Assembly (NCBI GenBank): GCA_965202585.1
Contig: OZ241832.1
Span: 52,328,001-52,392,000, forward strand
Direction of reading: 5' to 3'
DNA from: Thalia democratica
Taxonomy: Eukaryota
Length of the DNA stretch: 64,000 bases
This document shows, piece after piece, positions 8,007 through 46,844 of the stretch. Each line of letters begins with the position of its first letter. Within the stretch, counting starts at the first letter, position 1. A model generated the notes under the pieces. That model made no database searches. It saw only the letters and a list, made by a program, of their open reading frames with translations, and was not told the DNA's origin. The translations under genes and the position numbers were made by a program.

Positions 8007-8636
8007 TCAAGAAGCCAACATGGCAACAGGCTCTTTCTCCTGCTCATCAGCAGCGGGCACCTCGGGAAGCTTCGCATCCGGAACTTCAGGCAGTGCCACG
8101 CCCGGCAGCTTGTGCATCTCCTTGGCAACAATCTGATCCAGCTCGGCCAGCAGGTCATCATCGTCCTCCTGGCTCATGCCACCTCCCAGTAGCTCATCTA
8201 GCTCCTTCTGGTACTCTATGGAGTCCTGCGTGTCCTCCATGATCTTCTCCACGTCCTCCCTGCTCATCAGGGCGTGCAACTGCTTCAGCGCCTGGTTGCC
8301 CGCCCTGAGCCCCTCCATCACCTTGTTCTGCGTCTGCGCCTCCTCGATGCGGTCCACCATCTGCTCCAGGTTGTCCAGCTGCCCCGCGGTCCTGTCCAGC
8401 AGCACGTCCTGCCTCTTCTTTTTCTTGAGCAGCAGCATGGCCTTGTCCCTCCTGCCCTCTTTCAGGCACTCCTTGGCCAGCCGCCTGAGCTTCTCGTGCT
8501 CGGCTTCAATCTTCCTCTGGTACAGCTTCAGCTGGTCCCTCTGCTTTTTCACTTGGAGGACAGCGTGGTCTGCGTCCGTTATCCTCGGGTCGGGCTTGCG
8601 CTTGTCAGCCTTGTTTCTGCTGAACAGTCCTCCCAT
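8007..8636 (-). CDS. CHMP6: Charged multivesicular body protein 6 / Vps20 (ESCRT-III, Snf7 family), single coding exon, 209 aa
   Basis: N-terminal myristoylation motif MGGLFSR, ITDADHAVLQVKKQRDQLKLYQRKI, LLLKKKK, acidic C-terminus with LPEVP. Confidence 0.95.
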   Translation of the reverse strand: MGGLFSRNKADKRKPDPRITDADHAVLQVKKQRDQLKLYQRKIEAEHEKLRRLAKECLKEGRRDKAMLLLKKKKRQDVLLDRTAGQLDNLEQMVDRIEEAQTQNKVMEGLRAGNQALKQLHALMSREDVEKIMEDTQDSIEYQKELDELLGGGMSQEDDDDLLAELDQIVAKEMHKLPGVALPEVPDAKLPEVPAADEQEKEPVAMLAS

Positions 8637-22147: not shown

Positions 22148-24005
22148 GACTAGATCATGGTTTTCCAAAATTAAGCGATACCGCGTGAAAGAAAGTCATT
22201 GGTGCAGAGTTGTCTTTTTTAATCAATTTTATTTACAAAAATTACTCGAGCAGCACATTTTATAATAGAACTAACATATATTTAATGTTCAGTATTCAAT
22301 TCGCACATCAACCCTTTATTTTTGGTAACCCTGCATTGATAAAACATAAAGTTCTCTTTCAAACAAATATTTTTAAAAGTAAACTAAGTCGCCTCCAAAT
22401 ACTACCTTTGATTTAAAACTGCTAGAATAGCTATATTTTTTGATGTTTGTTCTCAGTTTTATCTAATGAAATAGTAAGACTAATCATAGTATAGTTTATT
22501 CAACAAAAACGAAAAATATTGCTCAAAAATTTTTTGGTTTAATGACCTGGTAACGCAAAAAGACCTTTCGGTCATCTAGTTTTTTATACAACTAATTTGT
22601 ATAAATGTTAATCAGACAATAAATTTTCATATTAACTGTTTTATGGAAACCTCTATTGTGATACAAAACTAAATTGTTTTTATTAATTAAAATTTAAACT
22701 TAAATAAATGCGCAAATATAATGTAAAAGACATCTTAAAATTTGCAAAACTAGTGATAAAAAAACAAAAGCCTTCAAAATTTTATAGGGCTTAATTACAG
22801 AGCTAAGCTTATCAAAGTGATTATTTTTTTTAACCTTTGAAATGAAATTTTATAATAAAAATATTATTCAAAAAAGTTTTAAGACTTAAGGACTTAAGTT
22901 ATTAAAATATTTTTTGTTTCGGATAAACTCGTAAATGGTTTCTTCGCTATTAACTTCAAAGCGGAGACTTTCATACAGTAATATTGTTTATTGAACAAAA
23001 AAATAAAGTACTCAAAATGTTTGGTCTTTGAACCTGGTGCAGGAAAAATCTTTTGATTATTGAGTCGCACACCACTAAACGTCGTGTCTAGGATAATACA
23101 ACATGAAGTTATGCTTTTGCGTGTGTTGTGCTAGCAAATAAACTTATATAAATTTACTTAGCACAGTTTTAATAACTATAGAATAACTGTTTTTAATTAA
23201 AATGATATAACTTATGCAAATACACTTTTTACTTTTAAGTGGTTATCATTAAATTATCCGTAACTGATCTATTTTACTACCATAAAATACTTTCACAAAA
23301 CATAAATAACAATTTTTACGTTTTAAATAAAACTTTTAAAAAGATATAATAAAGCCAACTAAATAGGTTATCTTTTTAAATAAAAGTAATACTTATCGAT
23401 GTATGAAGCTTTATATCAGAGTTAAAATACAAGTAACTTATTTTCAAAACTTTTCATATTAGAGGATTTTTCAGTCGACTTTTAGGGTAAAACAATCAAA
23501 AATCGGTTCAAAAAAAGTTTATGATAAACTTACTGGCATAGATGCCAAAAGTAGCTTAAACGCTGAAAATTTGTTCTAAATTCAGCTTTGTTTCACAAAA
23601 GCTGTAAAATTATCATAAAAACCTTTTAATCCGAACTTTAGAAAATACGCCAAATTTGAATCCCTCCAAATAATTTTTTCAAATATTATTTAGCTAAAGT
23701 TTATAAATTGTTGTCAAAATGGCAATATGACTGTTGAAACTAATAAAATATCATTATAGTTAGAAGGAATATGATAAACATTTTGATAGTTGAAATGACA
23801 CTTTCAGTTAATAAAAAAAAATTATGAAAACATGAACATATATAATATATCACAATAAATCTTTAAAGTAGCGAAACTTTGCTAGAATTTGCTTTATTAT
23901 AAACTAACTTGCTAGTATCAGCCCAACTTGATAATAGCTACATGCGAAAAAAACTGAATTTACAAAATTAATTTGCTAACACTAAGACATATATATAATT
24001 ATGTT

Positions 24006-24057
24006 TAACTGTACTTAGCAGGGGCGTGTTTTGACTGGTTTCCTGTTTCCTGTAGAC
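24006..24057 (+). promoter_or_regulatory. Putative Pol II promoter motifs at the head of array unit 1 (GC-box-like GGGGCGTG, tandem ETS-like TTCCTG; CRE palindrome TGACGTCA at about 24262)
   Basis: GCAGGGGCGTGTTTTGACTGGTTTCCTGTTTCCTGT is a rare GC-rich island, kept in unit 2 (about 29942-29978, TGACGTCA at about 30183). Confidence 0.4.
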
Positions 24058-25023
24058 CCCTTGATGTAAAAAAAAGGAAAAAGGAGAAAAAGATTCTTAG
24101 AATATAATTAAAAACGTTGTTTATTGACTTTGTTTTGGTTATTTAATAAACTTTGAATAATGAATGTTGAATTCATAACACTGAAAGATTATAAGTTTCC
24201 TTAACAAAAAAATGCTCATTTTTGCCCAGCTGAAATAGATTTTAAATAAAGTTTTAATTGTGACGTCATAATAAGTAAAAATTTTAAAGTTAATTTTTTT
24301 CTGGGAAACATTTCACTAAGATGCTTTTAGTTCCCACTATAAATTGTTGCTTGGTGTAAATAAATTTTGAACAAGTATTGTTTTTGAACTAATAAGTACA
24401 ATTTTACTTAAAAGATGTCCAATATAATCACTAAAGTTTTATTTTACTTAATTGATTGTTTATAATAATTTTGTGTTAAACTTTTGTACCTTAACATTTA
24501 TAATTTTTGTTTATGTGTCAACCAACTGGGTTTAAATCTTGAAAAGTTCAATTTTGAGCTTTTTCAAAATCATCTTTAGACCACTACACTACCTGGAAAT
24601 TTATTCTTTTATCGTTTAATGGTATTTAAATATTTTTATATTAGCTGTTTTATTTTTTTATATCTGTTGGCCACAAAGTTTGTTCTTATTCTTTTTTAAT
24701 TTTTAACTCAGAGAGATTTCAAAATTATCATAAGAAATCCTGCACTATCAGGCAAACATTTAATTACAATTTAAAGATATTTCAATTTAATTATATAATT
24801 TTACGATCGTTGTCAAACTGTTTTTTACCTGTAAAAAACTAATTGATGGCTAAAAATGCACATTTAGAGTAAATTAACTTTCATATAGTTTCGTGCAAAC
24901 TGAAATGAAGTTGTTGCTGTAATTCCTTTTTTGTACATAAGTAAGTGAAAGAATAAATAGTAGAAAGTTAACTGAATTTACTTTTTTTGCCTGGACGAAC
25001 TAAATCTGAGCTTTGATCAACAG

Positions 25024-25189
25024 CTGCATCTCAAAACAATTTAAAAAATGCGAGTTATTTGAGCAATATACCTCACTTAGTTAGAAAAGAGGAAGTGTAA
25101 CTTGATTGTCTGATGAAACAAGTGTTAATTCATTTAAGTGTGAAGTCACCTTCTTTGTGATAATCTATCTGATTTTGAATCTATTGCCA
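25024..25189 (+). other. Exon-like unit B1 (copy at 30948)
   Basis: Branch-like ACTAAAT, pyrimidine tract and CAACAG| acceptor; shares ATGCGAGTTATTTG and AGAGGAARTGTAACTTGAT with the other B units; donor weak (GTACAG). Confidence 0.45.
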
Positions 25190-25277
25190 GTACAGACTTT
25201 GTTTAGTTAAATATATTAGAAAAATTTATTAGAATAAACTAGTGTGTAGGCATAAAGTAACACCACTGATTTGAATA

Positions 25278-25981
25278 CAGTGATTTCTCACTTATCCGGC
25301 CATTTTGGGCAAGCTTTTTTTGTAAATGAGGCCGGATTACCCTTTGGCCGGATAAAGAATAATATTGCTTTTTTCATATACCTCATATGCAGTGCATGCA
25401 ATAATACGTTTATTAAATATAAGTTAACTTAAATTAATGAATTTTTTCAACATATCAAAAATATAAAGCAGACGAAAATTAACGTAACAAAGCTTTGTAA
25501 AGTTTAAAATTAATGTAACGAAAAATAATTAGATCGTGAGTAGTTTAACTAATGCGGAGCTCTTTCTGAAAAAGAAAAAGAAGAGGCTTGTTTGTTTCTT
25601 GTTTTTAGCATAAAACTCGTAGAACTGGATAAGTTGTGAAATACTTTCAGATTTTTATTGTTTTTTGTTTCATCCGACCGATTGTGTACTAATGCTAAGA
25701 TATGTCTTGACAACATTTTTAAAAACAACCCGGTTTCATCACAATCGAAAATTGAATGTTAGGAGTAGCCCTCAGTTTGATATTTTATATTTGCATATCG
25801 CAAAAAATATAATTCAATTATCAAGTTTAATTTCTCTAAGAACTATCACATCACTATAAACTGCTTGCTTAGTTATTGAAATCAAATAAGACATGTATTT
25901 ATAATAAAACATTAGTTTAAAAAATCTTGACTTAAACCGTTCGTATGTATAAGCGAGGACCAGATAAGTGAGGAAGCACTG
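25278..25981. mobile_element. Tc1/mariner (pogo/Tigger-like) non-autonomous element, copy 1
   Basis: TA|CAGTGATTTCTCACTTATCCGG...CCAGATAAGTGAGGAAGCACTG|TA. Confidence 0.75.
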
Positions 25982-26626
25982 TAGTTTGATAAACTATAGT
26001 TTAAAGTTTACAACTTAATTGTGAACTATTAACCATAGTGAGATGTTTCGAATAATTTTACTAAATATTCTATTTAAAATTAGTGAAATTTAGTACTCAT
26101 ATATAAGTTATCTGTTTATTAAAATAGAGGTTATTCAAAATAACCTAAATATGAAACCAAAGGTCCTACGATTGTTAGATCAACCAAGATTTTATAATGT
26201 TGTATCTAAATTGTAAATTGTGAAATTCGATTCACATATTTAAATATTCTGTATCATTCAAGAAAATATTATACAGAAGTACTTAAATATGAAAATAGAA
26301 GATCATATTTTGTTACAGTAACTAATGTACATTTTCATATACACAAACACATCAAAACTAGTGATATTTGGTTCATAAATTTAAGTATTTCTGCATGATT
26401 TTGTGAAATATTTGATACAAAAATAATTCAATTTCTAAACAAAATATCATCACAAGTTGTAAAACTTCAAATAATAATACTTTTTTTTCAAAGTTTGTGA
26501 AATCCGGTTCACATTTTTAAGTTTTCTATATCATTACGTGTAAAACATATACTACAGAAATACTTGAATATAGAAACAGAACATCCTGTTTGTTGAAAAA
26601 AAACCTAACAAAACTTTTATCAACAG

Positions 26627-26800
26627 CCGCATCTCAAAACTATTGAAATATTTGTTGTTTTTGTAAAAGAATGCGAGTTATTTGCGCAAGAAAGGTCAAA
26701 GAGCTGAACAGAGGAAATGTAGCTTGATCTTCTGACGAAACCATTGTTACGTGTAGCGCGAACATACATTCATTATGTAGACTGATTCTGCTTTACACGC
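26627..26800 (+). other. Exon-like unit B2 (copies at 32499 and 37217)
   Basis: TTTTATCAACAG| acceptor; same conserved core; no donor at the homologous position. Confidence 0.45.
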
Positions 26801-27615
26801 CGAGAATGAACTTTGTTAATTTGAACAGACTGCATTAACTTATCAGAAAAATCAGTATGCAGACGTATACTAATAATGCTGTTTTGAATTATTAATATAA
26901 TAAACTATATTTCAAAGCTTTATTTTTTACTCGTGAAATATTAAGCATAAATAAGATTTGTCTTAGTTTAGTGAAATTTGGTACTCATATATTAGTTATC
27001 TGTATATTTTTGCATAATATATACAAAATAATTTAAATATGAAACCAAACATCCTACGATTATTAGAACAGCCAAAAACTTTTATAAGCTTAAGACTAAA
27101 ATTAAAACTTTGAAATTCGGCTCACACACCTAACCTTTATGTATCACTTTACAAAAACATGGTACAGAAGTACTTAAGTATGTAAATAAAAAAATCATAA
27201 ATCGTTTTATAACAAGAAATTTATGTAGAAACAGAACAAAAGAAGTGAAATTCGGTTCACATATTTTAATCTTCTGTATCATTTTATAAATATACTACAA
27301 AATTACTCAAACTTATATTCAAAAAAACTATATTCAAAAAAATAAGCAGCTAAACTCTGAAATAGTTTGTAGGGAAAATAATCATACATTTTTAAGCATC
27401 TTTATAAAAATTTCACGTCTCCCTCGTGATTCTTTAGTTATAATTCATGTAGCTGATGGTTTTTGCAATAATTTACATTAAATATTGTAACTATTTTAGA
27501 TTCTTTCATTAAAAAGAATATTTAACAGATGTTCAAAGCGGGCTCAGTAAAGATTGATTCAATTGAATAAGCTAAATTCTATTTTGTAATAATACATATA
27601 AACAGATCAAAATAA

Positions 27616-27702
27616 CTGATATTCGGTTCACATATTTAAGTCTTCTGTATCATTAAAAAAATATATGATACAGAAGTATTTAAATATGGAAATAGAAAAT
27701 CA
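27616..27702 (+). ncRNA. Best-formed representative hairpin of the array
   Basis: 5' arm CATATTTAAGTCTTCTGTATCA (27631-27652), 13-nt loop, 3' arm TGATACAGAAGTATTTAAATATG (27666-27688); lower stem TGATATTC..TTC / GAA..GAAAATCA. Confidence 0.65.
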
Positions 27703-28305
27703 TATTTTGTTACAGTAACAAATTTAAATATTACAGTTAACAAACTTAAATTAAAATATATAATATCAGATCAAAATTAGTGAAATTCGGTTCACTTATT
27801 AAAGCTTTCTGTATCATTCAAAAAATATATAATACAGAATTAATTAAATATGAAATCAAAATATCATCATAAGTTATAAAACTTCAAATACTAATAATTA
27901 TTTTTCCCAAAGTTATTGAAATCCGGTTCCCACATTTAAGTTTTCTGTATCATTATGTGTAAGGTATTTGGTACAGAAATACTTAAATATGAAAACAAAA
28001 CATCATGCTTGTTAAAAAACAACTTACTAAAACTTGAAATAAAGCAACTTTGTTTAGTCGTTTTACTTCATTTTACAAATTGTTTTTAATCTTTAAAAAC
28101 TACTTGATACTTAAAAAATGCACGTTCTGCGTAAAATTATTTTTTTATGTTTTATATATAATTATTTAGTTTCGTACAAAGTGAAATTATATTGTTGCCT
28201 GTTATGCTTTTTATTTACAAGATAAGTGAAAAAATAAGTAATAAAAATATAACTTATACAACTTTTTATGACTCGGATAAACTAAATCTAAAGTTTTATC
28301 TACAG

Positions 28306-28464
28306 CTTCTTCTCAAAATTATTGAGAAATATCTGTTTTTTGTAAAAATATGCGAGTTAGTTGTGCAATACACCTCAAATAGTGGGAAAAGAGAAAGTGT
28401 GATTTGAGTTGTAGCGCGAAAATACATTTCACATATAGACACTGGTTCTGTTTCTATCAAAAAA
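28306..28464 (+). other. Exon-like unit B3 (copies at 34172 and 38891)
   Basis: TTTTATCTACAG| acceptor and AAAA|GTAAGT donor at 28465; stops in all three frames. Confidence 0.55.
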
Positions 28465-29577
28465 GTAAGTTTAAAAAAAATATTATGGTTAGAAACTAAG
28501 CTCATTTAAATTTGTAAAAAATATGCAAGTTAGACTAAGCTCATATGATTGTGTTCATAATTGTATGTCAAGTTTTATTTATTTTTCTGTTTTTTTATAC
28601 TTAGCGCGAACAAAAATTTAATTTACAAACTGATTTTTCTTTAACCACCAATTATTAACTTTGTAAATTTAAATATACTGGATAAAGTTCCAAAAATCAG
28701 TTAGTAGGCATAAACTAATACTATTATTGGGAACTATTAATATAAAAAACTCTAATTTGAAGCTTCCAACTGCTTTGTAAACTATTAAACATAAATAAGA
28801 TGCTGTATTTAACTTTGCTTTAATTTCAAATAGTGTTGTTTATATTATTTGTATATTTTTACACTGTTCATACAAAACAACTAAAATATGAAACCAAAGA
28901 TCTTACGACCAACCAAGATTCTTTATAAAGTTTTGACTAAATTGAACGTTGTGATGTTCGGCTCACATATTCAAGTCATCTGTATCATTCAAAAATATAT
29001 GGTACATAATTACTTGAATATGCAAACAGTAACAAATATACATTTTCAAATTTAAATAACCAGACCAAAATTAGTGATATTCGGTTCACACATTCAAGTT
29101 TTCTGTATCACGTTATGAAATATATGATACAGAAATACTTAAATATGTAAACAAAATATCATCAAGAATTGTAAAACTTCAAATATTAGTGAGTTATTCT
29201 TTTCCAAAACTAGTGAAATCCAGTTTTCATATTTAAGTTTTCTGTATCATTATGTATAAGGTATATGTTACAGAAATACTTAAATATGGAAACAAAACAT
29301 CATGCTTGTAAAAAAATCTTACTAAAACTTAAATAAACAACTTTAACCATTTTACTTTATTTAAAATTTTTTTTTATCTTTTAAAATCTACTTGACAGCT
29401 AAAAATGCACGTTCATCGTGAAATTAACTTTGTTTTAGTTTAATACAAACTGAAATGAAACGGTTGCTTAAATTTTTTTTTTTTTATATAAAATAAGTGA
29501 GAGAATGAGTAGTAAAAAGTTTGCAGAACTCACTTATTTTTTGCCTGGACAAACTAAATTTGAACTTTTATCAACAG

Positions 29578-29760
29578 CTGCATCTCAAAACTATTGAGAA
29601 ATTTTGTTTTTTGTAGTAGAATGCGAGTTATTTGCGTCATTCTACTTAAAAGCGTGAGAGCAGAGGAAATGTAATTTGATCCTGTGATGAAATCAGTCTT
29701 ACATTGACTGTGTGGCGCGAGCGTTCTTTACGATAGACTGATTCTGTCTTATGCGCATAA
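29578..29760 (+). other. Exon-like unit B4 (copies at 35446 and 40168)
   Basis: ACTAAAT...TTTTATCAACAG| acceptor and ATAA|GTATGA donor at 29761; no conserved ORF. Confidence 0.55.
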
Positions 29761-31201
29761 GTATGAATTTTGTGAAAATATGTTCTATCCATTTCAATAA
29801 ACTTTTAATATCAATGATCTAATTTTTACAACAACCAGTGTTTTAGTATTTAAAGTTTAACAAGTATGTTTGACACTATTACATGTACTAATTAACTTGA
29901 TAAAACTAAGACATATATATAAATATGTTTAACTGTATTTAGCAGGGGCGTGGTTTGACTGGTTTCCTGTTTCCTGTGAAACCCCGGAAAAAAAAGAAAG
30001 AAAAAGGAAAAAAAGATTCTTAGAATATCAATTAAAACGTTGTTTATTGACTTTTTTTTGGTTGTTTGATTAACTTTGAATAATGAATGTTGAATTTATA
30101 GCACTGAAAGATTATAAGTTTCCTTAACAAAAAATGCTCGTTTTAGCCCAGCTGAAATAGATTTTAAATAAAGTTTTAATTGTGACGTCATAATAGGTAA
30201 AATTTTTAAGGTTGCATATCTTTTTTCTGGGAACCATTTTACTAAGATGCTTTAAGTTCCCATTATAAATTGTTGCTTAGTGTAAATAACTTTTGATTGA
30301 GTATTGTTTTGAACTTATAAGTAAAATTTTACTTAAAAGATGTCCAATATAATCACTAAAGTTTTATTTTACTTAATTGATTGTTTATGATAATGTTGTG
30401 TGAAACTTTTGTACCTTAACATTTATATTTTTGTTTATGTGTCAACCAACTGGGTTTAAACCTTGAAAAGTTCAATTTTGAGAGTTTTCAAAATTATCTT
30501 TAGACCACTACACCACCTGGTAATTTATTCTTTTATCATTTACTGGTATTTTAATATTTTTATATTAGCTGTTTTATTTTTGTATATCTGTTGGCCACAA
30601 ATTTTGTTCTTGATTTTTTGAAATTTCTAACTACGAGATATTTCAAAATTATCATTAGAAATCCTGCACCATCAGGCAAAAAATTAATTATAATGTAAAG
30701 ATATTTTAATTTAATTGTATAATTTTACTATCGTTGTCAAACTGTTTTTTACCTGTGAAAAACTACTTGATGGCTAAAAATGCATATTTAGCTTAAATTA
30801 ACTTTCATATAGTTTCGTGCAAACTGAAATGAAGTTGTTGCTGTAATTATTTTTTTGTACATAAGTAAGTGAAAGAATAAATAGTAGAAAGTTAACTGAA
30901 TTTACTTTTTTTGCCTGGACGAACTAAATCTGAGCTTTTATCAACAGCTGCATCTCAAAACAATTTAAAAAATGCGAGTTATTTGAGCAATATACCTCAC
31001 TTAGTTAGAAAAGAGGAAGTGTAACTTGATTGTCTGATGAAACAAGTGTTAATTCATTTAAGTGTGAAGTCACCTTCTTTGTGATAATCTATCTGATTTT
31101 GAATCTATTGCCAGTACAGACTTTGTTTAGTTAAATATATTAGAAAAATTTATTAGAATAAACTAGTGTGTAGGCACAAAGTAACACTACTGATTTTAAT
31201 A

Positions 31202-31904
31202 CAGTAATTTCTCACTTATCTGGCCATTTTGGGCAAGCATTCTTTGTAAATGAGGCCGAATTAGCCTTTGGCCGGATAAAAAAAATATTGCTTTTTTCAT
31301 TTACCTCATATGCAGTGCGTGCAATAATACGTACACTTGAATATATGTTAATTTGAATTATTAAATTTTTTTAAACATACCAAAACATTAAAGCAGACGA
31401 AAATAAACGTAGCAAAGCTTTGTAAAGTTTAAAATTAACGTAACAAAAAATAATTAGATCGTGAGTAGTTTAACTAATATCGGAGCTCTTTCTGAAAAGA
31501 AAAAGAAGAGGCTTGTTTGTTTCTTGTTTTTAGCACAAAAGTCGTAGAACTGGATAAGTTGTGAAACACTTTCTGGTTTTTATTGTTTTTTGTTTCATCC
31601 GACCGATTGTGTACTAATGCTAAGGTATGTCTTGGCAACGTTCTTAAAAAAAACCGGTTTCATCACAATCACAAATTGAATGTTAGGAGTAGCCCTCAGT
31701 TTGATATTTTATAATTTCATATCGAAAAAAAAAATTCAATTATCAAATTTAATTTCTCTAAGAACTATCACATCACAATGAACTGCTTGCTTAGTTATTG
31801 AAATCAAATTAGACATGTATTTATAATAAAAAATTAGTTTAAAAAAAATCTTCTTGACTTAAACCGTCCGTATAAGCGAGGACCAGATAAGTGAGGAAGC
31901 ACTG
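31202..31904. mobile_element. Tc1/mariner (pogo/Tigger-like) non-autonomous element, copy 2 (duplicated with the array)
   Basis: Same TIRs and TA flanks, at the homologous position in unit 2. Confidence 0.75.
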
Positions 31905-34900
31905 TATAATAAACTATAGTTTGAAGCTTACAACTTACTTGTGAACTATTAACCATAGTGAGATGTTTCGAATAATTTAATAAATATTCTATTTAAAATT
32001 AGTGAAATTTGGTACTCATATATAAGTTATCTGTTTATTACAATATAAGTTATTCAAAATAACCTAAATATGAAACCAAAGATCCTACGATTGTTAGATC
32101 AACCAATATTGTACAATATTGTATCTAAATTGTAAATTGTAAAATCCGGTTCACACATTTAAGTTTTCTATATCTTTACGTGTAAAATATATGCTAGAGA
32201 AATACTTGAATATGGAAACAAAACATCATGTTTATAAAAAACAACTTACTAAAACTTTAAATAAAGCAATTTAATTAGTTGCTTTACTGTATTTAATCCT
32301 TAAAAAACTACCTGACAGCTAAAAACGCACATTTAGCGTAATATTAGCTTTTATGTAGTTTCATACAAACTGAAATGATATTGTTGCAGGAATCAATTTT
32401 TTGTACAAAAATAAGTGAGAGAATAAGCAGTAAAAAAATATTCGAACTCACTTTATTTTTACCTTGACGAACTAAATCTGAACTTTTATCAACACCAGCA
32501 TCTCAAAACTATTGAGAAAATTTGTTGTTTGTGTAAAAGAATGCGAGTTATTTGCGCAAGAAAGGTCAAAGAGCTGAACAGAGGAAATGTAGCTTGATCG
32601 TCTGACGAAACCATTGTTACGTGTAGCGCGAACATACATTCATTGTGTAGACTCATTCTGCTTTACACGCCGAGAATGAACTTTGTTAGTTTGAACAGAC
32701 TTTGTTTAATTTATCAGAAAATTCAGTATGTAGACGTATACTAATACTGCTGTTTAGAATTATTAATATAATAAACTATACTTCGAAGCTTTATTTTTAC
32801 TCGTAAAATATTAAGCATAAATAAGATTTGTCTTAGTTTAGTGAAATTCGGTACTCATGTTTTAGTTATCTGTATATTTTTGCATAAGATATACAAAATA
32901 ACTTAAATATGAAACCAAAGATCCTACGATTATTAGAACAGCCAAAAACTTTTATAAGCTTAAAACTAAAATGAAAATTGTGAAATTCGGCCCACACACT
33001 TAACCTATATGTATAATTTTACAAAAACATGGTACAGATGTACTTAAGTATGTAAATAAAAAATCATAAATCTTTTTATAACAACAAATTTATGTAGAAT
33101 CAGAACAAAAGAAGTGAAATTCGGCTCACATGTTTTAATGTTCAGTATCATTTCAGAAATATACTACAAAATTACTCAAACTTATAATCAAAAAAATTAT
33201 ATTCAGAATAATAAGCAGCTAAACTCTGAAATAGTTTGTAGGGAAAAAAATCATACATTTTTCAGCATCATTATAAAAAATTCACATCTTCTCGTGCTTC
33301 TTTAGTTATAATTCATGTAGCTGATGGTTTTTTGCAGTAATTTACATTAAAATATTGTAACTTTTTTAGATTCTTTCATTAAAAAGAATATTTAACAGAT
33401 GCTCAAAGCGGGCTCAGTAAAGATTGATTCAATTGAATAAGCTAAATTCTATTTAGTAATATTACATAAAAACAGATCAAAATAACTGATATTCGGTTCA
33501 CATATTTAAGTCTTCTGTATCATTAAAAAAATGTATGATAGAGAAGTATTTAAATATGGAAATAGAAAATCACATTTTGTTACAGTAACAAATTTAAATG
33601 TTACAGTTAACAAACTTAAATCAAAATATATATTACCAGATCAAAATTAGTGAAATTCGGTTCACTTATTAAAGCTTTCTGTATCATTCAAAAAATATAT
33701 AATACATAATAACTTAAATTTGAAAACAAAATATCATCATAAGTTGTAAAACTTAAAATACTAATGAATTTTTTTTCCAACTAGTGAAATCCGGTTACCA
33801 CATTTAAGTTTTCTGTATCATTTTTCTAAGACATATGGTACAGAAATACTTGAATATGAAAACAAAACATCATGTTTGTAAAAAACAACTTACTAAACAT
33901 TGAAATAAAGCAAATTTGTTAAGTCGTTTTACTTCATTTAACAAATTGTTTTTTATCTTTAAAAACTACTTGATATTTAAAAAATGCACATCTGCGTAAA
34001 ATTAATTTTTTATGTTTTATATATAATTATTTAGTTTCGTACAAAGTGAAATGATATTGTTGCCTGAATTGTTTTTTATTTACAAAATAAGTGAAAATAT
34101 AAGTAATAAAAATTTAACTTAAACAACTTTTTTTTTACTCGGCTAAACTAGATCTGAACTTTTATCTACAGCTCCTTCTCAAAATTGTTAAAAATATCTG
34201 TTTTTTGTAAAAATATGCGAGTTAGTTGTGCAATACACCTCAAATAGTGGGAAAAGAGAAAGTGTGGTTTGAGTTGTAGCGCGAAAATACATTTCACATA
34301 TAGACTGGTTCTGGTTCAATCAAAAAAGTAAGGAGTTTTGGAAAAAAAAATTTGGTTAGAAACTAAGTTCACACTGATTGTGTTCATAATTGTATGTCAA
34401 GTTTTATTCATTTTTCTGTTTTTTTATACTTAGCGCGAACAAAAATTTAACTTACAAACTGATTCTTCTTTAACCACCAATTGTTAACTTTGTAAATTTA
34501 AATATACCGTATTTAGTTCATAAAATCAGTGTGTAGGAATAAACTAATACTTTTTTTGGGAACTATTAATATTAAAAAAAACTGTAATTTGAAGCTTCCA
34601 ACTGCTTAGTAAACTATTAAACATAAATAAGATGCTGTATATAATTTTACTTTAATTTCAAATGTTGATAATTAGATTATTTGTATATTTTTCCACTGTT
34701 TATACAAAAATAAATAAAATGTGAAACCAAAGATCCTACGATTGTTAGACCAACCAAGAATTTTTATAAAGTTTTGACTAAATTGAATGTTGTGATGTTT
34801 GGCTCACATATTCAAGTCTTCTGTATCATTAAAAAAATATATGGTACATAATTACTTGAATATGTAAATAGAAAACCATATTTTGTAACAGTAACAAATA

Positions 34901-37900
34901 TACATTTTCATATTTAAATAACCAGACCAAAATTAGTGATATTCGGTTCACACATTCAAGTTTTCTGTATCACGTTATGAATTATATGATACATAAATAC
35001 TTAAATATGTAAACAAAATATCATCAAGAATTGTAAAACTTCAAATATTAGTGAGTTATTCTTTTCCAAAATTAGTGAATTCCGGTTCCCATATTAAAGT
35101 TTTCTGTATCATTATGTGTAAGTTATATATTACAGAAATACTTAAATATGGAAACAAAACATCATGCTTGTAAAAAAATCTAACTAAAACTTGAAATAAA
35201 ACAACTTTGTTTAGTCATTTTACTTTATTTTTCAAATTAGTTTTTAACTTTAAAATTCTACTTGACAGCTAAAAATGCACGTTCAGTGTAAAATTAACTT
35301 TGTTTTAGTTTAATACAAACTGAAATGAAACGGTTGCTTAAAATGTTTTTTTAATATAAAATAAGTGAGAGAATGAGTAGTAAAAAGTTAACAGAACTCA
35401 CTTATTTTTTGCCTGGACAAACTAAATTTGAACTTTTATCAACAGCTGCATCTCAAAACTGTTGCGAAACTTTGTTTTTTGTAATAGAATGCGAGTTATT
35501 TGCGTCATTCTACTTAAAAGCGTGAGAGCAGAGGAAATGTAATTTGATCCTGTGATGAAATCAGTCTTACATTGACTGTGTGACGCGGGCGTTTTTTACG
35601 ATAGACTGATTCTGTCTTATGCGCATAAGTATGATTTTTGTGAAAATATGTCCCTATCCATTTCAATAAACTTTTAATATCGATGATCTAATTTTTACAA
35701 CAACCAGAGTTTTAGTATTTAAAATTTAACAAGTATGTTTGACACTATTACATGTTAACCACTTTTTGAGTCAGAAAATAAGCCTGAGTGACTAAAGACT
35801 AGACTTAGTACACAAGCTAATCTTAAGGAGTGGTATATATAAGCAAAAAACTAATTTAAATTACAATGAAAATTAGACATTTATAGATCTTGAATTATTT
35901 AAATATTAACAATTAATTACTAATTAAAAAATTTCAAGTAAAGCAACAGTTGAAGATTTTTAAAAGATATCAAAATAAACCCAATATTTTTAATGAAATT
36001 ATAACTAGTCTCAGTCAAGCCGAGTTTTTGTAAATATATTAAAACTAGCCTCAGTTGGTCTAGGTTTTTCATGATTTAAAACTAGACTTAATTATTCTTA
36101 GAGAGCTATGTATGTGACAGCCCTGACATTATTGACCCTTCCTATACTTTAATTTTATTTTAAGTAAAACATATATGATTTTTTTCGGCCTAACTAATTT
36201 TTTGTCAAATATCAGTTGATTAAGCTGATTAATATAGTGATTTTTAAATGTAGCAAAACGATTTTAAACAATAAAAGTTAATAAAATTAAACATTAATAG
36301 AACAGTTTTATTTTGTTTTAAGAATCTATGAGATTTGCTCACTTCGCTTTTTTTTTTGGGCAGCTAAGGGTGGAAGAATTTTTACATAAGGTAACAGAAT
36401 AGAACTAGGAGAGTACAAAAATTGTCGTTTTATTAACAACTTATTATTTTTATCTGTTTATTAAAATATAAGTTATTCAAAATAATCTAAATATGAAACC
36501 AAAGTTCCTACGATTGTTAGATATTTTTATACTTTTAATTATAAACCAAGATTTTATAATGTAGTATCTAAATTGTAAATTGTGAAATTCAATTCACATA
36601 TTTAAGTATTCTGTATCATTCAAGAAAATATTTACAGAAGTACTTAAATATGAAAATAGAAGATCATATTTTGTTACAGTAACAAATGTACATTTTCATA
36701 TACCTAAACAGATCAAAATTAGTGATATTCGGATCATAAATTTAAGTATTTCTGCATCGTTTTGTGAAATATTTGATACAAAAATACTTGAATATGTAAA
36801 CAAAATATCATCATTAGTTGTAAAACTTCAAATATTAATACCTTTTTTTTTAAGTTTGCGAAACCCGGTTCACATATTTAAGTTTTCTATATCATTATGT
36901 GTAAAATATATGCTACAGAAATAGTTGAATATGGAAACAAAACATCATGTTTGTTAAAAAAAAAACTTACTAAAACTCGAAATAAAGCAATTTTATTTAG
37001 TAGCTTTACTGTATTTAATCCTTAAAAAACTACTTGACAGCTAAAAATACACATTTAGCGTAAAATTAGCTTTCATTTAGTTTCATACAAACTGAAATGA
37101 TATTGTTGCTGGAATTAATTTTTGTACAAAAATATGTGGGAGAATAAGTAGTAAAAAGTTATTCGAACTCACTTTTTTGCTGCCTGGACAAACTAAATCT
37201 GAACTTTTATCAACAGCCGCATCTCAAAACTATTGATAAATTTGTTGTTTGTGTAAAAGAATGCGAGTTATTTGCACAAGAAAGCTCAAAGAGCTGAACA
37301 GAGGAAATGTAACTTGATCGTCTGACGAAACCATTGTTACGTGTAGCGCGAACATACATTCATTATGTAGACTGATTCTGCTTTACACGCCGAGAATGAA
37401 CTTTGTTAGTTTGAACAGACTGCATTAACTTATCAGCAAATTCAGTTTGAAGACGTATACTAATGCTAATGTTTTGAATTATTATCAGAATAAACTATAC
37501 TTCGAAGCTTTATCTTTTACTCGTAAAATATTAAGCATAAATAAGATTTGTCTTAGTTTAGTGAAATTTGGTACTCATATATTAGTTATCTGTATATTTT
37601 TGCATAAGATATACAAAATAACTTAAATATGAAACCAAAGATCCTACGATTATTAGAACAGCCAAAAACTTTTATAAGCTTAAAACTAAAATTAAAATTG
37701 TGAAATTCGGCTCACACACTTAACCTTTATGTATAATTTTACAAAAACATGGTACAGAAGTACTTAAGTATGTAAATAAAAAAATCATAAATCGTTTTAT
37801 AACAACAAATTTATGTAGAATCAGAACAAAAGTAGTAAAAATCGGCTCACATGTTTTAATCTTCTGTATCATTTTAGAAATATACTACAAAATTACTCAA

Positions 37901-40900
37901 ACTTATAAACAAAAACATTATATTTAAAAATATAAGCAGCTAAACTCTGAAATAGTTTGTAGGGAAAATAATCATACACTTTTCAGCATCTTTATAAAAA
38001 TTTACGTCTCCCTCGTGCGTCTTTAGTTATAATTTATGTAGCTGATGGTTTAGCAATAAGCTACATTAAATATTGTAACTTTTTTAGATTCTTTCATTAA
38101 AAAGAATATTTAACAGATGTTCAAAGCGGGCTCAGTGAAGATTGGTTCAATTGAATAAGCTAAATTCTATTTTGTAATAATAGATATAAACAGATCAACA
38201 TAACTGATATTCGGTTCACATATTTAAGTCTTCTGTATCATTAAAAAAATATATGATACAGAAGAACTTAAATATGGAAATAGAAAATCATATTTTGTTA
38301 CAGCAACAAGTTTAAATCTTACAGTTAACAAACTTAAATTAAAATATATATTACCAGATCAAAATTAGTGAAATTCGGTTCACTTATTAAAGCTTTCTGT
38401 ATCATTCAAAAAATATATAATACATAATAACTTAAATTTGAAAACAAAATATCATCATAAGTTGTAAAACTTAAAATACTAATGAATTTTTTTTCCAACT
38501 AGTGAAATCCGGTTACCACATTTAAGTTTTCTGTATCATTTTTCTAAGACATATGGTACAGAAATACTTAAATATGAAAACAAAACATCATGTTTGTTAA
38601 AAAACAACTTACTAAACATTGAAATAAAGCAACTTTGTTAAGTCGTTTTACTTCATTTTACAAATTGTTTTTTATCTTTAAAAACTACTTGATATTTAAA
38701 AAATGCACATCTGCGTAAAATTATTTTTTTATGTTTTATATATAATTATTTAGTTTCGTACAAAGTGAAATGATATTGTTGCCTGAATTGCTTTTTATTT
38801 ACAAAATAAGTGAAAATATAAGTAATAAAAATTTAACTTAAACAACTTTTTTTTTACTCGGCTAAACTAGATCTGAACTTTTATCTACAGCTCCTTCTCA
38901 AAATTGTTAAAAATATCTGTTTTTTGTAAAAATATGCGAGTTAGTTGTGCAATACACCTCAAATAGTGGGAAAAGAGAAAGTGTGGTTTGAGTTGTAGCG
39001 CGAAAATACATTTCACATATAGACTGGTTCTGGTTCAATCAAAAAAGTAAGGAGTTTTGGAAAAAAAAATTTGGTTAGAAACTAAGTTCACACTGATTGT
39101 GTTCATAATTGTATGTCAAGTTTTATTCATTTTTCTGTTTTTTTATACTTAGCGCGAACAAAAATTTAACTTACAAACTGATTCTTCTTTAACCACCAAT
39201 TGTTAACTTTGTAAATTTAAATATACCGTATTTAGTTCATAAAATCAGTGTGTAGGCATAAACTAATACTATTATTGGGAACTATTAATATTAAAAAAAA
39301 ACTATAACTTGAAGCTTTCAACTGTTTTGTAAACTATTAAACATAAATAAGATGCTGTATATAATTTTGCTTTAATTTCAAATATTGATATTTAGATTAT
39401 TTGTATATTTTTCCACTGTTTATACAAAAATAAATAAAATGTGAAACCAAAGATCCTACGATTGTTAGACCAACCAAGAATTTTTATAAAGTTTTGACTA
39501 AATTGAATTTTGTGATGTTTGGCTCACATATTCAAGTCTTCTGTATCATTCAAAAAACATATGGTACGTAATTACTTGAATATGCAAATAGAAAACCATA
39601 TTTTGTAACAGTAACAAATATACATTTTCAAATTTAAATAACCAGACCAAAATTAGTGATATTCGGTTCACACATTCAAGTTTTCTGTATCACGTTATGA
39701 ATTATATGATACATAAATACTTAAATATGTAAACAAATATCATCAAGAATTGTAAAACTTCAAATATTAGTGAGTTATTCATTTCCAAAACTAGTGAAAT
39801 CCGGTTCCCATATTTAAGTTTTCTGTATCATTATGTGTAAGGTATATGTTACAGAAATACTTAAATATGGAAACAAAACATCATGCTTGTAAAAAAATCT
39901 TACTAAAACTTGAAATAAAACAACTTTGTTTAGTCATTTTACTTTATTTTTCAAATTATTTTTTAACTTTAAAAACTTACTTGACAGCTAAAAATGCACG
40001 TTCAGTGTAAAATTAACTTTGTTCTAGTTTAATACAAACTGAAATAAAACGGTTGCTTAAAATGTTTTTTTTTTAATATAAAATAAAAGAGAGAATGAGT
40101 AGTAAAAAGTTAACAGAACTCACTTATTTTTTGCCTGGACAAACTAATTTTGAACTTTTATCAACAGCTGCATCTCAAAACTGTTGCGAAACTTTGTTTT
40201 TTGTGATAGAATGCGAGTTATTTGCGTCAGACTACTTAAAAGCGTGAGAGCAGAGGAAATGTAATTTGATCCTGTGATGAAATCAGTCTTACATTGACTG
40301 TGTGACGCGGGCGTTTTTTACGATAGACTGATTCTGTCTTATGCGCATAAGTATGATTTTTGTGAAAATATGTCCCTATCCATTTCAATAAACTTTTAAT
40401 ATCGATGATCTAATTTTTACAACAACCAGAGTTTTAGTATTTAAAATTTAACAAGTATGTTTGACACTATTACATGTTAACCACTTTTTGAGTCAGAAAA
40501 TAAGCCTGAGTGACTAAAGACTAGACTTAGTACACAAGCTAATCTTAAGGAGTGGTATATATAAGCAAAAAACTAATTTAAATTACAATGAAAATTAGAC
40601 ATTTATAGATCTTGAATTATTTAAATATTAACAATTAATTACAAATTAAAAAATTTCAAGTAAAGCAACAGTTGAAGATTTTTAAAAGATATCAAAATAA
40701 ACCCAATATTTTTAATGAAATTATAACTAGTCTCAGTCAAGCCGAGTTTTTGTAAATATATTAAAACTAGCCTCAGTTGGTCTAGGTTTTTCATGATTTA
40801 AAACTAGACTTAATTATTCTTAGAGAGCTAAGTATGTGACAGCCCTGATATTATTGACCCTTCCTATACTTTAATTTTATTATAAGTAAAAAATAATTGA

Positions 40901-41264
40901 TTTTTTTTTGCCTAACTAATTTTTTGTCAAATATCAGTTGGTTAAGCTGATTAATATAGTGATTTTTAATGTAGCAAAACGATTTTAAACAATAAAAGTT
41001 AATAAAATTAAACATTAATAGAACAGTTTTATTTTGTTTTAAGAATCTATGAGATTTGCTCACTTCGCTTTTTTTTTTGGGCAGCTAAGGGTGGAAGAAT
41101 TTTTACATAAGATAACAGAATAGTACTAGGAGAGTACAAAAATTGTCGTTTTATTAACAACTTATTATTTTTATCTGTTTATTAAAATATAAGTTATTCA
41201 AAATAACCTAAATATGAAACCTAAATATGAAAGAAATAACCTAAATAATATGAAAATAAGTCTC

Positions 41265-45524: not shown

Positions 45525-46844
45525 ATGAAGGTCACAACAGCGGTCTTTTGCGTCCTGACGTTCTGCTTGTGCGCAACGTTCAGGTGCTTCGAAAATGCGC
45601 GACTGGCAGGGAGAGTGCAAAACGAACAGCCACGGGAAAATACTCATCCGCCAAGAAAAAGGCGTCCGTACTGATCGCACCCACTTTCGCAACGTGCCCG
45701 GAAACCAGCTCAAGCTCGTCTTTCTCGTCAAACGTGTGAAATATGACGAGAACAGCGATGACCAGTGGAATTGCAGCCCGCGCGCCATGAGATACTATTG
45801 GAGATCGTTAGTACATTTTTTTTATTGAAAACTTTAAAACAATTAAGATATAAAAAAACAGCAACAATATTGTTCTGTATGCCTTTTAACTTTTGTTTAA
45901 AAGCTTAACAATTGGACCCACTTTATTTTGTTAAAAGCTAACCCGTTTCAAAGAAGACTCGCTATTAACATTCGCAGCAAATTGAATAAGGAAAAAATGA
46001 TCAACACGACTCTGATGGTGGATCAAGTGGGAAGCGCTAACAGGCAGTTTAACCTCGACATAGGATCAGTCGACTTGAACGATGTTCGTTCGTGTGGGGT
46101 ATCGTCCTGACCACGGAGGATCCGAAACAGAAGTTCGACTGCTGCAGGATCGAGAATTACTTAAAAGATGACTTCAATGAGAATTGGGACGAAATGGCAA
46201 ACCGAGTTCACAATTACGCAAAGTGCGAGTTCCACCACCGGTTCCCCGCTCCCACTCACGCCGTGCGCAAGGGAGGGTTGTACTTCAGGGAAAGTCCCTT
46301 CAAGCAGGGCTACGAAAGGCTGATGCGCATGGACTTCAGCGAGTTGGTTCCGAAATCACAGAACAGAAATGATTTTCGCATTGTACGATAATGCGTTTGA
46401 AGGCAGCCTTCACACGTGCCCCCTACACGTCGAGTTGTGAGTTTGAACTTCTGTGTTCTATTTGTTGTTAGTTGATTGCTGTAACAACAAATTTTGTACC
46501 TCGCTTGTTTAATTGGTTTTAGTAAAGCTTGATATTTTTTATTGTTTTAGTGCTTTTTTACTTATAATTCAGAAATAAGAAAAATGGTAACTTTTTAGAG
46601 TTTTATTTTATTTAAACTTTATTTGCGCAGGAACTCGATTAATAACCGTCATCTTATTAAAGTCGCTAGCTTTTACAACAAAAAAGCCTACGGAAGCCAT
46701 ATAAACTACAGTTGGAAAGAATTTACCAGCTTGCCTTTGGATAAGTTGATAGGCAAAGGAGTGGCAATTATCTACAGCGGCAGCGTACACAAAAGGTGCT
46801 GCAACATAAAACCTGCTCATTCGACCAAATTTGAAAATTTGTAA
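45525..46844 (+). pseudogene. Secreted protein with two degenerate Cu/Zn-SOD-like domains; exons 45525-45806, 45954-46436, 46631-46844; three frameshifts (pseudogene or recoded gene)
   Basis: Signal peptide MKVTTAVFCVLTFCLC; both domains end alike (DLNDV.VWGIVL...KFDCCRI and PLDKLIGKGVAII...KRCCNI). Canonical GT-AG sites join the segments in phase only after removing 1+2+1 nt (979-4=975 nt, 324 aa). Confidence 0.65.

Follow-up and report, generated by a model that had tools for sequence, protein, structure and literature searches.

A constrained non-coding unit accompanies batches of microRNA-like hairpins in a tandem array of Thalia democratica and is a candidate spliced exon

Repeated units in which a non-coding exon alternates with an intron bearing a small RNA are typified by the SNORD115/116 host gene, Meg8/Rian and C14MC, all of which are mammalian and imprinted, carry one small RNA per intron and undergo documented splicing. 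We know of no animal cluster in which hairpin processing depends on a splice site. In primates, the hairpins of C19MC are located in introns of a Pol II non-coding transcript (C19MC-HG) with a repeated exon of ~120 nt (PMC2691840, which also mentions C14MC). In the miR-430 locus of zebrafish and other fishes, tandem units contain a few hairpins and one conserved non-hairpin block, which in these animals is interpreted as a promoter, and the promoter density is very high (PMC10417697). Finally, in plant MIR genes the 5' splice site promotes processing (PMC11197542); in MIR161, MIR163 and MIR172b, the hairpin is followed by a 5' splice site, a short intron and the terminal exon.

The window analyzed here, a stretch of 64,000 nucleotides of the Thalia democratica contig OZ241832.1, contains a tandem array of related pre-microRNA-like hairpins, with 39 hairpins of one family arranged in nine batches and one more located just beyond the array, at 41171. 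The array also includes eleven plus-strand units of a single family (hereinafter B), all of them at exactly the starts given in the original prediction, which had been made from this DNA alone. The B units fall into four subtypes in the order [B1 B2 B3 B4][B1 B2 B3 B4][B2 B3 B4], that is, they form a higher-order repeat, the copies of which are ~91% alike by self-BLAST. The features of the array are the following (hairpin batches are listed without strand).

23966-40477, plus strand: whole tandem array; higher-order copies 23966-29886 and 29890-35755, partial copy 36450-40477 (self-BLAST)
24941-25023, plus strand: intron-like interval before B1a; GTAAGT at 24941, GTGAAA at 24945
25024-25200, plus strand: B1a; block conserved with B1b spans 24922-25241; AATAAA at 25233
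26078-26590: hairpin batch 1, four hairpins (nhmmer map and folds)
26627-26814, plus strand: B2a; A region 5' deleted, CCTAAC and the TTTTATCAACAG acceptor block retained; weak GTTAAT at 26815
26967-28010: hairpin batch 2, six hairpins (nhmmer map and folds)
28226-28305, plus strand: intron-like interval before B3a; 80 nt, GTGAAA...CAG
28306-28464, plus strand: B3a, then GTAAGT at 28465; identity of repeat copies drops from 0.93 to 0.53 just past the unit
28837-29305: hairpin batch 3, four hairpins (nhmmer map and folds)
29497-29577, plus strand: intron-like interval before B4a; 81 nt, GTGAGA...CAG
29578-29760, plus strand: B4a, then GTATGA at 29761, with AATAAA at 29796; hairpins absent downstream
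30865-30947, plus strand: intron-like interval before B1b
30948-31124, plus strand: B1b
31997-32235: hairpin batch 4, two hairpins (nhmmer map)
32415-32498, plus strand: intron-like interval before B2b; 84 nt when counted to the new CAG, 81 nt to where the AG used to be
32499-32684, plus strand: B2b; ancestral AG changed to AC, new CAG ends at 32498; GTTAGT at 32685
32837-33880: hairpin batch 5, six hairpins (nhmmer map)
34091-34171, plus strand: intron-like interval before B3b; 81 nt
34172-34327, plus strand: B3b, then GTAAGG at 34328
34787-35170: hairpin batch 6, three hairpins (nhmmer map)
35365-35445, plus strand: intron-like interval before B4b; 81 nt, without structure (z +0.72)
35446-35628, plus strand: B4b, then GTATGA at 35629, with AATAAA at 35665; followed by four hairpins from 36450
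36450-36950: hairpin batch 7, four hairpins (nhmmer map)
37136-37216, plus strand: intron-like interval before B2c; 81 nt, GTGGGA...CAG
37217-37404, plus strand: B2c; GTTAGT at 37405
37557-38600: hairpin batch 8, six hairpins (nhmmer map)
38810-38890, plus strand: intron-like interval before B3c; 81 nt
38891-39046, plus strand: B3c, then GTAAGG at 39047
39387-39890: hairpin batch 9, four hairpins (nhmmer map)
40168-40350, plus strand: B4c, last unit of the array; GTATGA at 40351, AATAAA at 40387

The expectation that three to six hairpins follow each B unit other than those of the B4 type fits most of the array; the departures are B1b, with two hairpins, and B4b, which is followed by four since B1 is missing from the third higher-order copy. 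In this repeat-rich region, the spacer 23966-24955 consists of a very high-copy element. The flanks of the array have no sequence in common with any other locus of the family, and hence gave no sign of additional conserved exons or of a promoter. A search of the whole window against Rfam yielded nothing at the gathering score, and the array itself produced two chance-level matches at E below 1; one hairpin compared with a phage collection had no match, and a search of the full-text literature with hairpin arm words gave chance matches only. Small-RNA data have been described for Salpa thompsoni (PMC5174732, PMC10686999).

The B units do not encode protein: stops interrupt all six frames, with a single chance exception of 53 aa, which agrees with the non-coding character originally proposed and rules out a coding exon. 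In composition, B is exon-like, with a GC content of 35% against 22% in the surroundings, the coding exons of this genome being likewise GC-richer, and is rich in CpG as well. Across the three repeat copies, B is the slowest-evolving class of sequence, with 30 variable columns out of 501 compared to 200 out of 1522 elsewhere, i.e., 94% invariant columns versus 87% in the rest of the array. B1a and B1b are 97-100% alike, against 81-95% for their flanks, and the identity of the B3 copies collapses directly after the GTAAGT. Thus, B is the most constrained element of the array, and we read each unit as the non-coding partner, kept under constraint, of one batch of microRNA-like hairpins.

The conservation peaks in a 25-nt block immediately upstream of B. 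All 11 B units of the window are preceded by TTTTAT(C)NACAG, and in all 29 units examined (these 11 and 18 elsewhere, on five contigs) a YAG occupies the aligned position. In a profile built from ten lineage representatives, the mean column identity is 0.90 over positions -25 to -1 and 0.53 over the next 35 nt, with the boundary exactly at the AG. The changes within the block preserve the pyrimidines (TTTTAT to TTTCAT) and the YAG (CAG to TAG). In the 32499 copy, CAACAG has become CAACAC and a new CAG is present 3 nt downstream, as originally noted, amounting to one compensating shift of the AG. The ACTAAAT reported before each unit is generally present, the exception being the 26627 copy, in which ~250 nt upstream were lost and CCTAAC, the tract and the AG were retained. 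At the sequence level, the block has the properties of a candidate 3' splice site of a repeated non-coding exon.

The donor side is less uniform. The GTAAGT, GTAAGG or GTATGA said to usually end the unit is found in the B3 and B4 types (6 of the 11 units), whereas the aligned place in B1 and B2 offers no more than weak GT sites (GTTTAG, GTTAAT, GTTAGT). Another donor-like sequence, GTGAGA, is located exactly 81 nt upstream of B in 21 of the 29 copies. The middle of this interval has diverged (identity 0.66) although its length is fixed, and it is unstructured, with folding z values between -0.4 and +1.5 relative to shuffled sequences. The real introns in the window begin with GTGAGT. Because B is directly preceded by this short intron-like interval, we describe the repeated module as a hairpin batch, the interval and B, ~1.1 kb altogether, rather than as one exon plus a hairpin-loaded intron of 1.3-1.7 kb, as had been proposed.

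The same module, consisting of one to six hairpins, then ~250 nt, then B, is present at 15 other loci (C5, C6, C8 and C312), with its order and orientation constant at all of them, and BLAST places suggest ~10 further module loci. Most of the other loci contain a single module, so that B there does not have hairpin-loaded introns on both sides, and the notion that B partitions such introns does not extend to them. Altogether, the genome has ~40-50 B-like units; almost all of them cluster on a single chromosome, in two regions, and their orientation is uniform within each half. Old copies on different chromosomes are ~68% alike, and what they have in common is only the 1.1-kb module with sharply bounded blocks inside it. 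The homology between distant loci begins only 12-50 nt upstream of the first hairpin, which leaves no conserved plus-strand promoter within the module. Many modules are carried by large segmental duplications, and at some chromosome-8 loci an additional element, not found in the window, lies ~1 kb upstream. Scanning metagenomes for a B motif gave 120 matches, all at chance level and without fit to the B or hairpin profile.

Compared with the described systems, the array is similar to C19MC in being a large tandem array of related hairpins with a short, apparently exonic non-coding repeat in each unit. However, C19MC has one hairpin per Alu-bounded unit of 400-700 nt, whereas the Thalia module contains one to six, includes a fixed 81-nt intron-like interval beside B and also occurs singly at other loci; furthermore, splicing and strand were demonstrated for C19MC by RT-PCR and ESTs, whereas the Thalia array is read from sequence, and the folds favor the opposite strand. 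With the SNORD115/116, Meg8/Rian and C14MC loci, the array shares the candidate repeated exon-intron units. The resemblance to miR-430 lies in the tandem units with few hairpins and one conserved non-hairpin block, although the zebrafish promoter has been defined experimentally, whereas the TATA-like block of Thalia varies at its key first position and lacks a fixed start motif. The order of elements in the module is that of the plant MIR genes, which differ in their processing machinery and in having single hairpins instead of batches.

The reading that we favor, tentatively and at somewhat less than an even chance, is that B is a small spliced non-coding exon on the plus strand. The layout of the module, its pattern of conservation, the constant spacing and the absence of coding capacity are direct observations, whereas we infer that the array is transcribed, from which strand, and that its GT and AG sites are used. 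Under this scenario, the hairpin batch would come first in the plus-strand primary transcript, followed by the fixed 81-nt intron, starting with GTGAGA and closing with a branch-like CTAAT, the TTTTAT tract and the YAG, and then by the B exon of ~160-190 nt. Because eleven modules are arranged head to tail in the window, splicing there might in addition join B unit to B unit over the hairpin-bearing intervals, in line with the original prediction. The B4 type looks like a terminal exon, with AATAAA ~35 nt past the GTATGA and hairpins absent behind two of the three copies. Splicing beside the hairpins might assist hairpin processing or transcript maturation. What stands of the proposed spliced host gene is a non-coding, exon-like unit with an acceptor-like site in every copy; the restriction of clear donors to 6 of the 11 units, the lack of a conserved plus-strand promoter in the module and the better folding of the hairpins on the minus strand speak against it. 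A search of public runs with a 10-kb stretch found no RNA run; the three runs that it returned cover B and the intervals alike over 23966-29886, without B-to-B joints, and since they behave like DNA, the missing joints are uninformative on splicing. A stronger form of the hypothesis appears improbable: either a self-contained microRNA cassette new to animals, in which the hairpin batch, the 81-nt intron and the exon multiply as a unit and the splice unit is needed for processing, similar to the plant MIR genes, or a minus-strand hairpin transcript that is controlled by the spliced plus-strand RNA running antisense to it.

The principal alternative reverses the strand: a primary microRNA transcript would run on the minus strand, with B serving as its promoter and 5' leader, one promoter per hairpin batch. 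We consider this unlikely overall, and the evidence bearing on it comes from both the hairpins and B. The minus strand yields the better folds for 95 of the 128 hairpins and at 16 of the 17 loci; the minimum free energy structures contain 57 G:U pairs on the minus strand and 25 on the plus strand, and C.A mismatches on the plus strand, each equivalent to a G:U pair on the minus strand, are more numerous than plus-strand G:U pairs (141 versus 18 within the window, 240 versus 60 elsewhere). The stems, the lower stem in particular, are better on the minus strand. However, the recent stem substitutions are symmetric between the strands (25 versus 22), so that the asymmetry rests on about four inherited positions, and two kinds of motif, a basal UG at -14 and GUG in the loop, occur on the plus strand only. 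Poly(A) signals are uninformative as a strand test because this AT-rich DNA contains chance signals, with a 34% chance of one in a 140-nt stretch. Read on the minus strand, the module consists of B, ~250 nt and one to six hairpins, with B on the same side at every locus, and it is only in this direction that each unit has one conserved non-hairpin block upstream of its hairpins; small transcription units would then follow one another along the array, as at the fish miR-430 locus, where one promoter per two or three hairpin triplets provides a precedent (PMC10417697). Since the homology between loci ends just past the hairpins on one side and ~190 nt past the AG on the other, each module would be self-contained, promoter included. 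The GC- and CpG-richness of B is compatible with a promoter, and the reverse complement of the acceptor block is the TATA-like ATAAAAG, which counts against the exon. The best conserved minus-strand block reads TTGATAAAAGT, or TATAAAAG in two copies, and the strict 81 nt that separate it from the neighboring conserved block are in keeping with a protein-DNA architecture. Yet, while ATAAAAG is retained in ~24 of the 29 copies, no position of the block varies more than the first T of the supposed TATA box, where G, C, A and T all occur, and one lineage has AATGAAAG; there is no start-site motif at a fixed position, and the putative start region is the least conserved. A TATA box also leaves the stop of conservation exactly at the AG unexplained, and downstream of B1, the best conserved B, the minus strand has a high-copy repeat and no hairpins.

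That B is neither a plus-strand exon nor a minus-strand promoter is also unlikely in our estimate. B could be functionless, a part of the repeat unit possibly derived from a mobile element, its likeness among copies resulting from recent duplication and gene conversion. The repeat-rich setting with its very high-copy spacer, the carriage of modules in segmental duplications and the neutral appearance of the recent stem substitutions (47 transitions, 40 transversions, few compensatory changes) are all in line with this possibility, which is nevertheless quite improbable given that B is half as variable as its neighbors within the same repeat copies, that the old copies on different chromosomes retain just the sharply bounded module, and that the 81-nt spacing is fixed despite the divergence of the sequence. 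Copies confined to few loci in uniform orientation, rather than scattered at random, differ from those of a dispersed mobile element, which we rejected. Very improbable, and largely refuted, is a small RNA gene within B or the 81-nt interval, be it a C/D box snoRNA, a spliced-leader RNA or a mirtron. UGAUGA is present in B1, B4 and most copies elsewhere, with CUGA ~50 nt further on in B1, B2 and B4, and the B4 interval contains the Sm-like motif AAAUUUGA. However, B3 has lost the UGAUGA region through a deletion and B2 has it in altered form, CUGA is missing from the copies elsewhere, and the Sm-like motif is not conserved. The snoRNA was rejected because the boxes are limited to some subtypes and there is neither a terminal stem nor a conserved structure of the A/B region on either strand (alifold -5.2 and -2.5 kcal/mol), in addition to the lack of an Rfam match at the gathering score; the mirtron was rejected because the interval folds no better than shuffled sequences. 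Spliced-leader and other structured RNAs were rejected as well.

The new observations reported here are the recurrence of the module at 15 other loci, the YAG in 29 of 29 units and the GTGAGA 81 nt upstream in 21 of them. Being more constrained than the hairpins, B marks the control element of this family under either the exon or the promoter reading, and it supplies precise junctions and start sites to seek in RNA data. Should B be a promoter, the locus would parallel the miR-430 array of fishes, with its extreme promoter density. If, on the contrary, B is a spliced exon, a pelagic tunicate would have independently built the type of host gene that harbors the largest microRNA cluster of primates, with the added twist that every hairpin batch would be coupled to a short intron of fixed length, and this would bear on the origin and joint expression of large lineage-specific microRNA families.

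The window corresponds to C8:52328001-52392000 of the 802-Mb assembly and is AT-rich (GC content of 22-28% over 10-46 kb). Between 23966 and 40477, it contains a tandem array of three higher-order copies (a to c) that are ~91% alike, the third being partial, without the spacer and B1. A repeat finder delineated one 11-member family with starts (25024, 26627, 28306, 29578, 30948, 32499, 34172, 35446, 37217, 38891 and 40168) identical to those originally assigned to the B units, the conserved blocks that accompany the hairpin batches, which bears out all eleven. Alignment of the B units yields four subtypes in the order B1-B2-B3-B4, B1-B2-B3-B4, B2-B3-B4, and a profile search identified 39 hairpins of a single family in nine batches of 2-6 between them, with one further member just past the array, at 41171. 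Stop codons occur in essentially all frames of B on both strands, so that the B units are, as anticipated, not protein-coding; the loss of the AG in the copy at 32499, with a new CAG 3 nt downstream, is seen as well. Other particulars of the original prediction require amendment. ACTAAAT does not precede every unit, being absent from B2a (26627); GTAAGT, GTAAGG or GTATGA, described as the usual end of B, is clear at the B3 and B4 types and follows only 6 of the 11 units; and the rule of 3-6 hairpins after each unit except the B4 types fails at B1b, with two hairpins, and at B4b (35446), with four. Overall, the observation is confirmed and its interpretation is partly supported.

Other features of the window
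3885-6140: 751-aa RNA-binding-protein-like open frame, adjoining the CHMP6-like gene
8007-8636, minus strand: CHMP6-like gene, one open frame
23966-24955 and 29890-30880: spacers at the start of higher-order copies, a very high-copy repeat
25270-25369 and 31190-31290: GC-rich inverted repeat CCGGCC...GGCCGG between B1 and the first hairpins, about -29 kcal/mol on either strand
35755-36450: ~700 nt of unrelated sequence between B4b and the four-hairpin batch
45525-46844: gene flagged for frameshifts, with at least one ordinary GTGAGT...CAG intron (~46438-46630) and further breaks, e.g., near 45790, without GT

The summed contig depth of the spacer repeat is 10^4-10^5 compared with ~10^2 elsewhere, and loose contig ends reach poly(A) at 24053, as expected of a retroposed element. 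The GC-rich inverted repeat, which may represent a small foldback element, has no relation to the hairpin family. Among named proteins, those closest to the CHMP6-like protein come from tunicates, cnidarians and fish (50-57% identity); an ENA contig of a relative encodes a 93% identical CHMP6-like protein and, beside it, a second gene of which 668 residues precede the contig end.

A whole-assembly BLAST search detected hairpins and B-like units on C8 (30.47-31.60 Mb) and on C5, C6, C2 and C312, other chromosomes or contigs of this assembly. Of sixteen paralogous loci retrieved, 15 contribute another 18 B units, every one of them preceded by 1-6 hairpins that share its orientation; the remaining one (L015, C2:28381000-28390999) carries 13 tandem hairpins of the family and no B within 10 kb. 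The 1.1-Mb region of C8 (loci L001, L002, L004, L005, L007-L013 and L016) forms a mirror-image mega-locus of this family, with at least 40 B-like units, all on the minus strand up to 30.91 Mb (left half) and all on the plus strand from 30.98 Mb onward (right half), most with hairpin matches 90-400 nt upstream in the B sense, and with tandem segmental repeats of ~70.7 kb and ~247 kb. Homology between the C5 and C8 loci (~68%) is confined to a 1.1-kb module whose limits are 12-50 nt upstream of the first hairpin and ~190 nt past the AG; the flanks of the array in the window match none of the other loci.

The repeated unit, predicted to comprise one exon and one hairpin-bearing intron, is indeed a module, but a wider one, given that conservation reaches ~250 nt upstream of each B. 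In this upstream stretch, a donor-like GTGAGA (GTGAAA, GTGGGA) opens an intron-like interval that closes at the B acceptor. Four of the 29 copies lack this interval; in the others it measures exactly 81 nt (21 copies), 79-80 nt (three) or 75 nt (one). Its folding is no more stable than that of shuffled sequence (z -0.4 to +1.5).

Invariant alignment columns across the three higher-order copies, by class
B: 94.0%
81-nt interval: 91.1%
Hairpins: 89.5%
Everything else in the array: 86.9%

The excess of invariant columns in B (30/501 variable compared with 200/1522 elsewhere), the likeness of B1a and B1b (97-100% over 24922-25241, with flanks at 81-95%), the drop in identity between copies from 0.93 to 0.53 directly past the GTAAGT of B3, and a base composition distinct from the rest of the array (GC 35% and CpG observed/expected 1.0, vs 22% and 0.84) all indicate that B is constrained. 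Co-amplification of B as sequence with no function is quite improbable.

Mean column identity over ten lineage representatives, relative to the start of B
-95..-74: donor block, 0.72
-73..-26: middle of the interval, 0.66
-25..-1: acceptor block, 0.90
+1..+35: start of B, 0.53
+36..+125: core of B, 0.74

We tentatively favor the possibility, just short of an even chance, that B is a plus-strand spliced non-coding exon. A YAG is present at the aligned acceptor-like place in all 29 B units, and the conservation peak stops precisely at the AG. In the C5 and C312 lineage, TTTTAT is replaced by TTTCAT and CAG by TAG, with pyrimidines and YAG retained, and in the copy at 26627 the entire upstream region is gone, yet CCTAAC, the tract and the AG remain. 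The replacement of the lost AG by a CAG in the copy at 32499 points the same way. GTGAGT opens two real introns in the window. A purine-rich run in the core of B, read from the alignment, would fit a splicing enhancer, such enhancers often being purine-rich. Within the spliced-exon reading, the B-to-B spliced host gene originally proposed appears doubtful.

The strand of the hairpins bears on this reading. In 95 of 128 cases, and at 16 of the 17 loci, the better fold is that of the strand opposite B, L015 being the sole locus where both folds are about equally good. In the common pairing scheme, the window has 141 C.A on the plus strand (G:U on the minus strand) compared with 18 plus-strand G:U, and the counts elsewhere are 240 and 60, with most of the difference in the lower stem; for the 14 hairpins of 26083-29305, the minimum free energy is -264 kcal/mol with 25 G:U on the plus strand vs -322 kcal/mol with 57 on the minus strand. 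Among close copies, recent substitutions are evenly divided between the strands (25 vs 22, and a further 40 that give plain mismatches), which leaves the asymmetry dependent on about four inherited positions, so that we give it moderate weight against the plus strand. Only the plus strand has a conserved UG at -14 relative to the predicted 5' cut and, in several loop types, GUG. On the minus strand, the acceptor block becomes the TATA-like TTGATAAAAGT and every hairpin batch has B upstream of it, which makes for a coherent rival, with B as a promoter or leader for each batch and a precedent in the repeated promoters of miR-430 (PMC10417697). However, the first position of the supposed TATA box varies most, one lineage has AATGAAAG there, the stretch where minus-strand transcription would begin is the least conserved, and no hairpins follow B1, the best-preserved B, on that strand, so that this alternative seems unlikely.

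A small RNA gene within B or the 81-nt interval is extremely improbable: no Rfam family matched, and no conserved structure emerged for B with its conserved upstream stretch, on the plus or the minus strand. A snoRNA in B was rejected, the UGAUGA and CUGA motifs not being kept in all subtypes and a terminal stem being absent, and the restriction of the co-oriented copies to few loci argues against a dispersed mobile element. A run search with a 9971-base query returned three matching runs of unspecified kind and no RNA run, which is weak evidence because so long a query can hide small RNA; contigs of these runs over 23966-29886 cover B and non-B sequence alike, with no joint at the predicted sites.

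The hairpin family was not found in the salp small-RNA papers and supplements searched. For a B-to-B host gene, the nearest match is C19MC-HG, with repeated 120-nt non-coding exons and hairpins within introns (PMC2691840). With its predicted splice sites, a B unit as a plus-strand exon would resemble plant MIR genes, in which a downstream intron promotes hairpin processing (PMC11197542), in the order of hairpins, 5' splice site, short intron and terminal exon.
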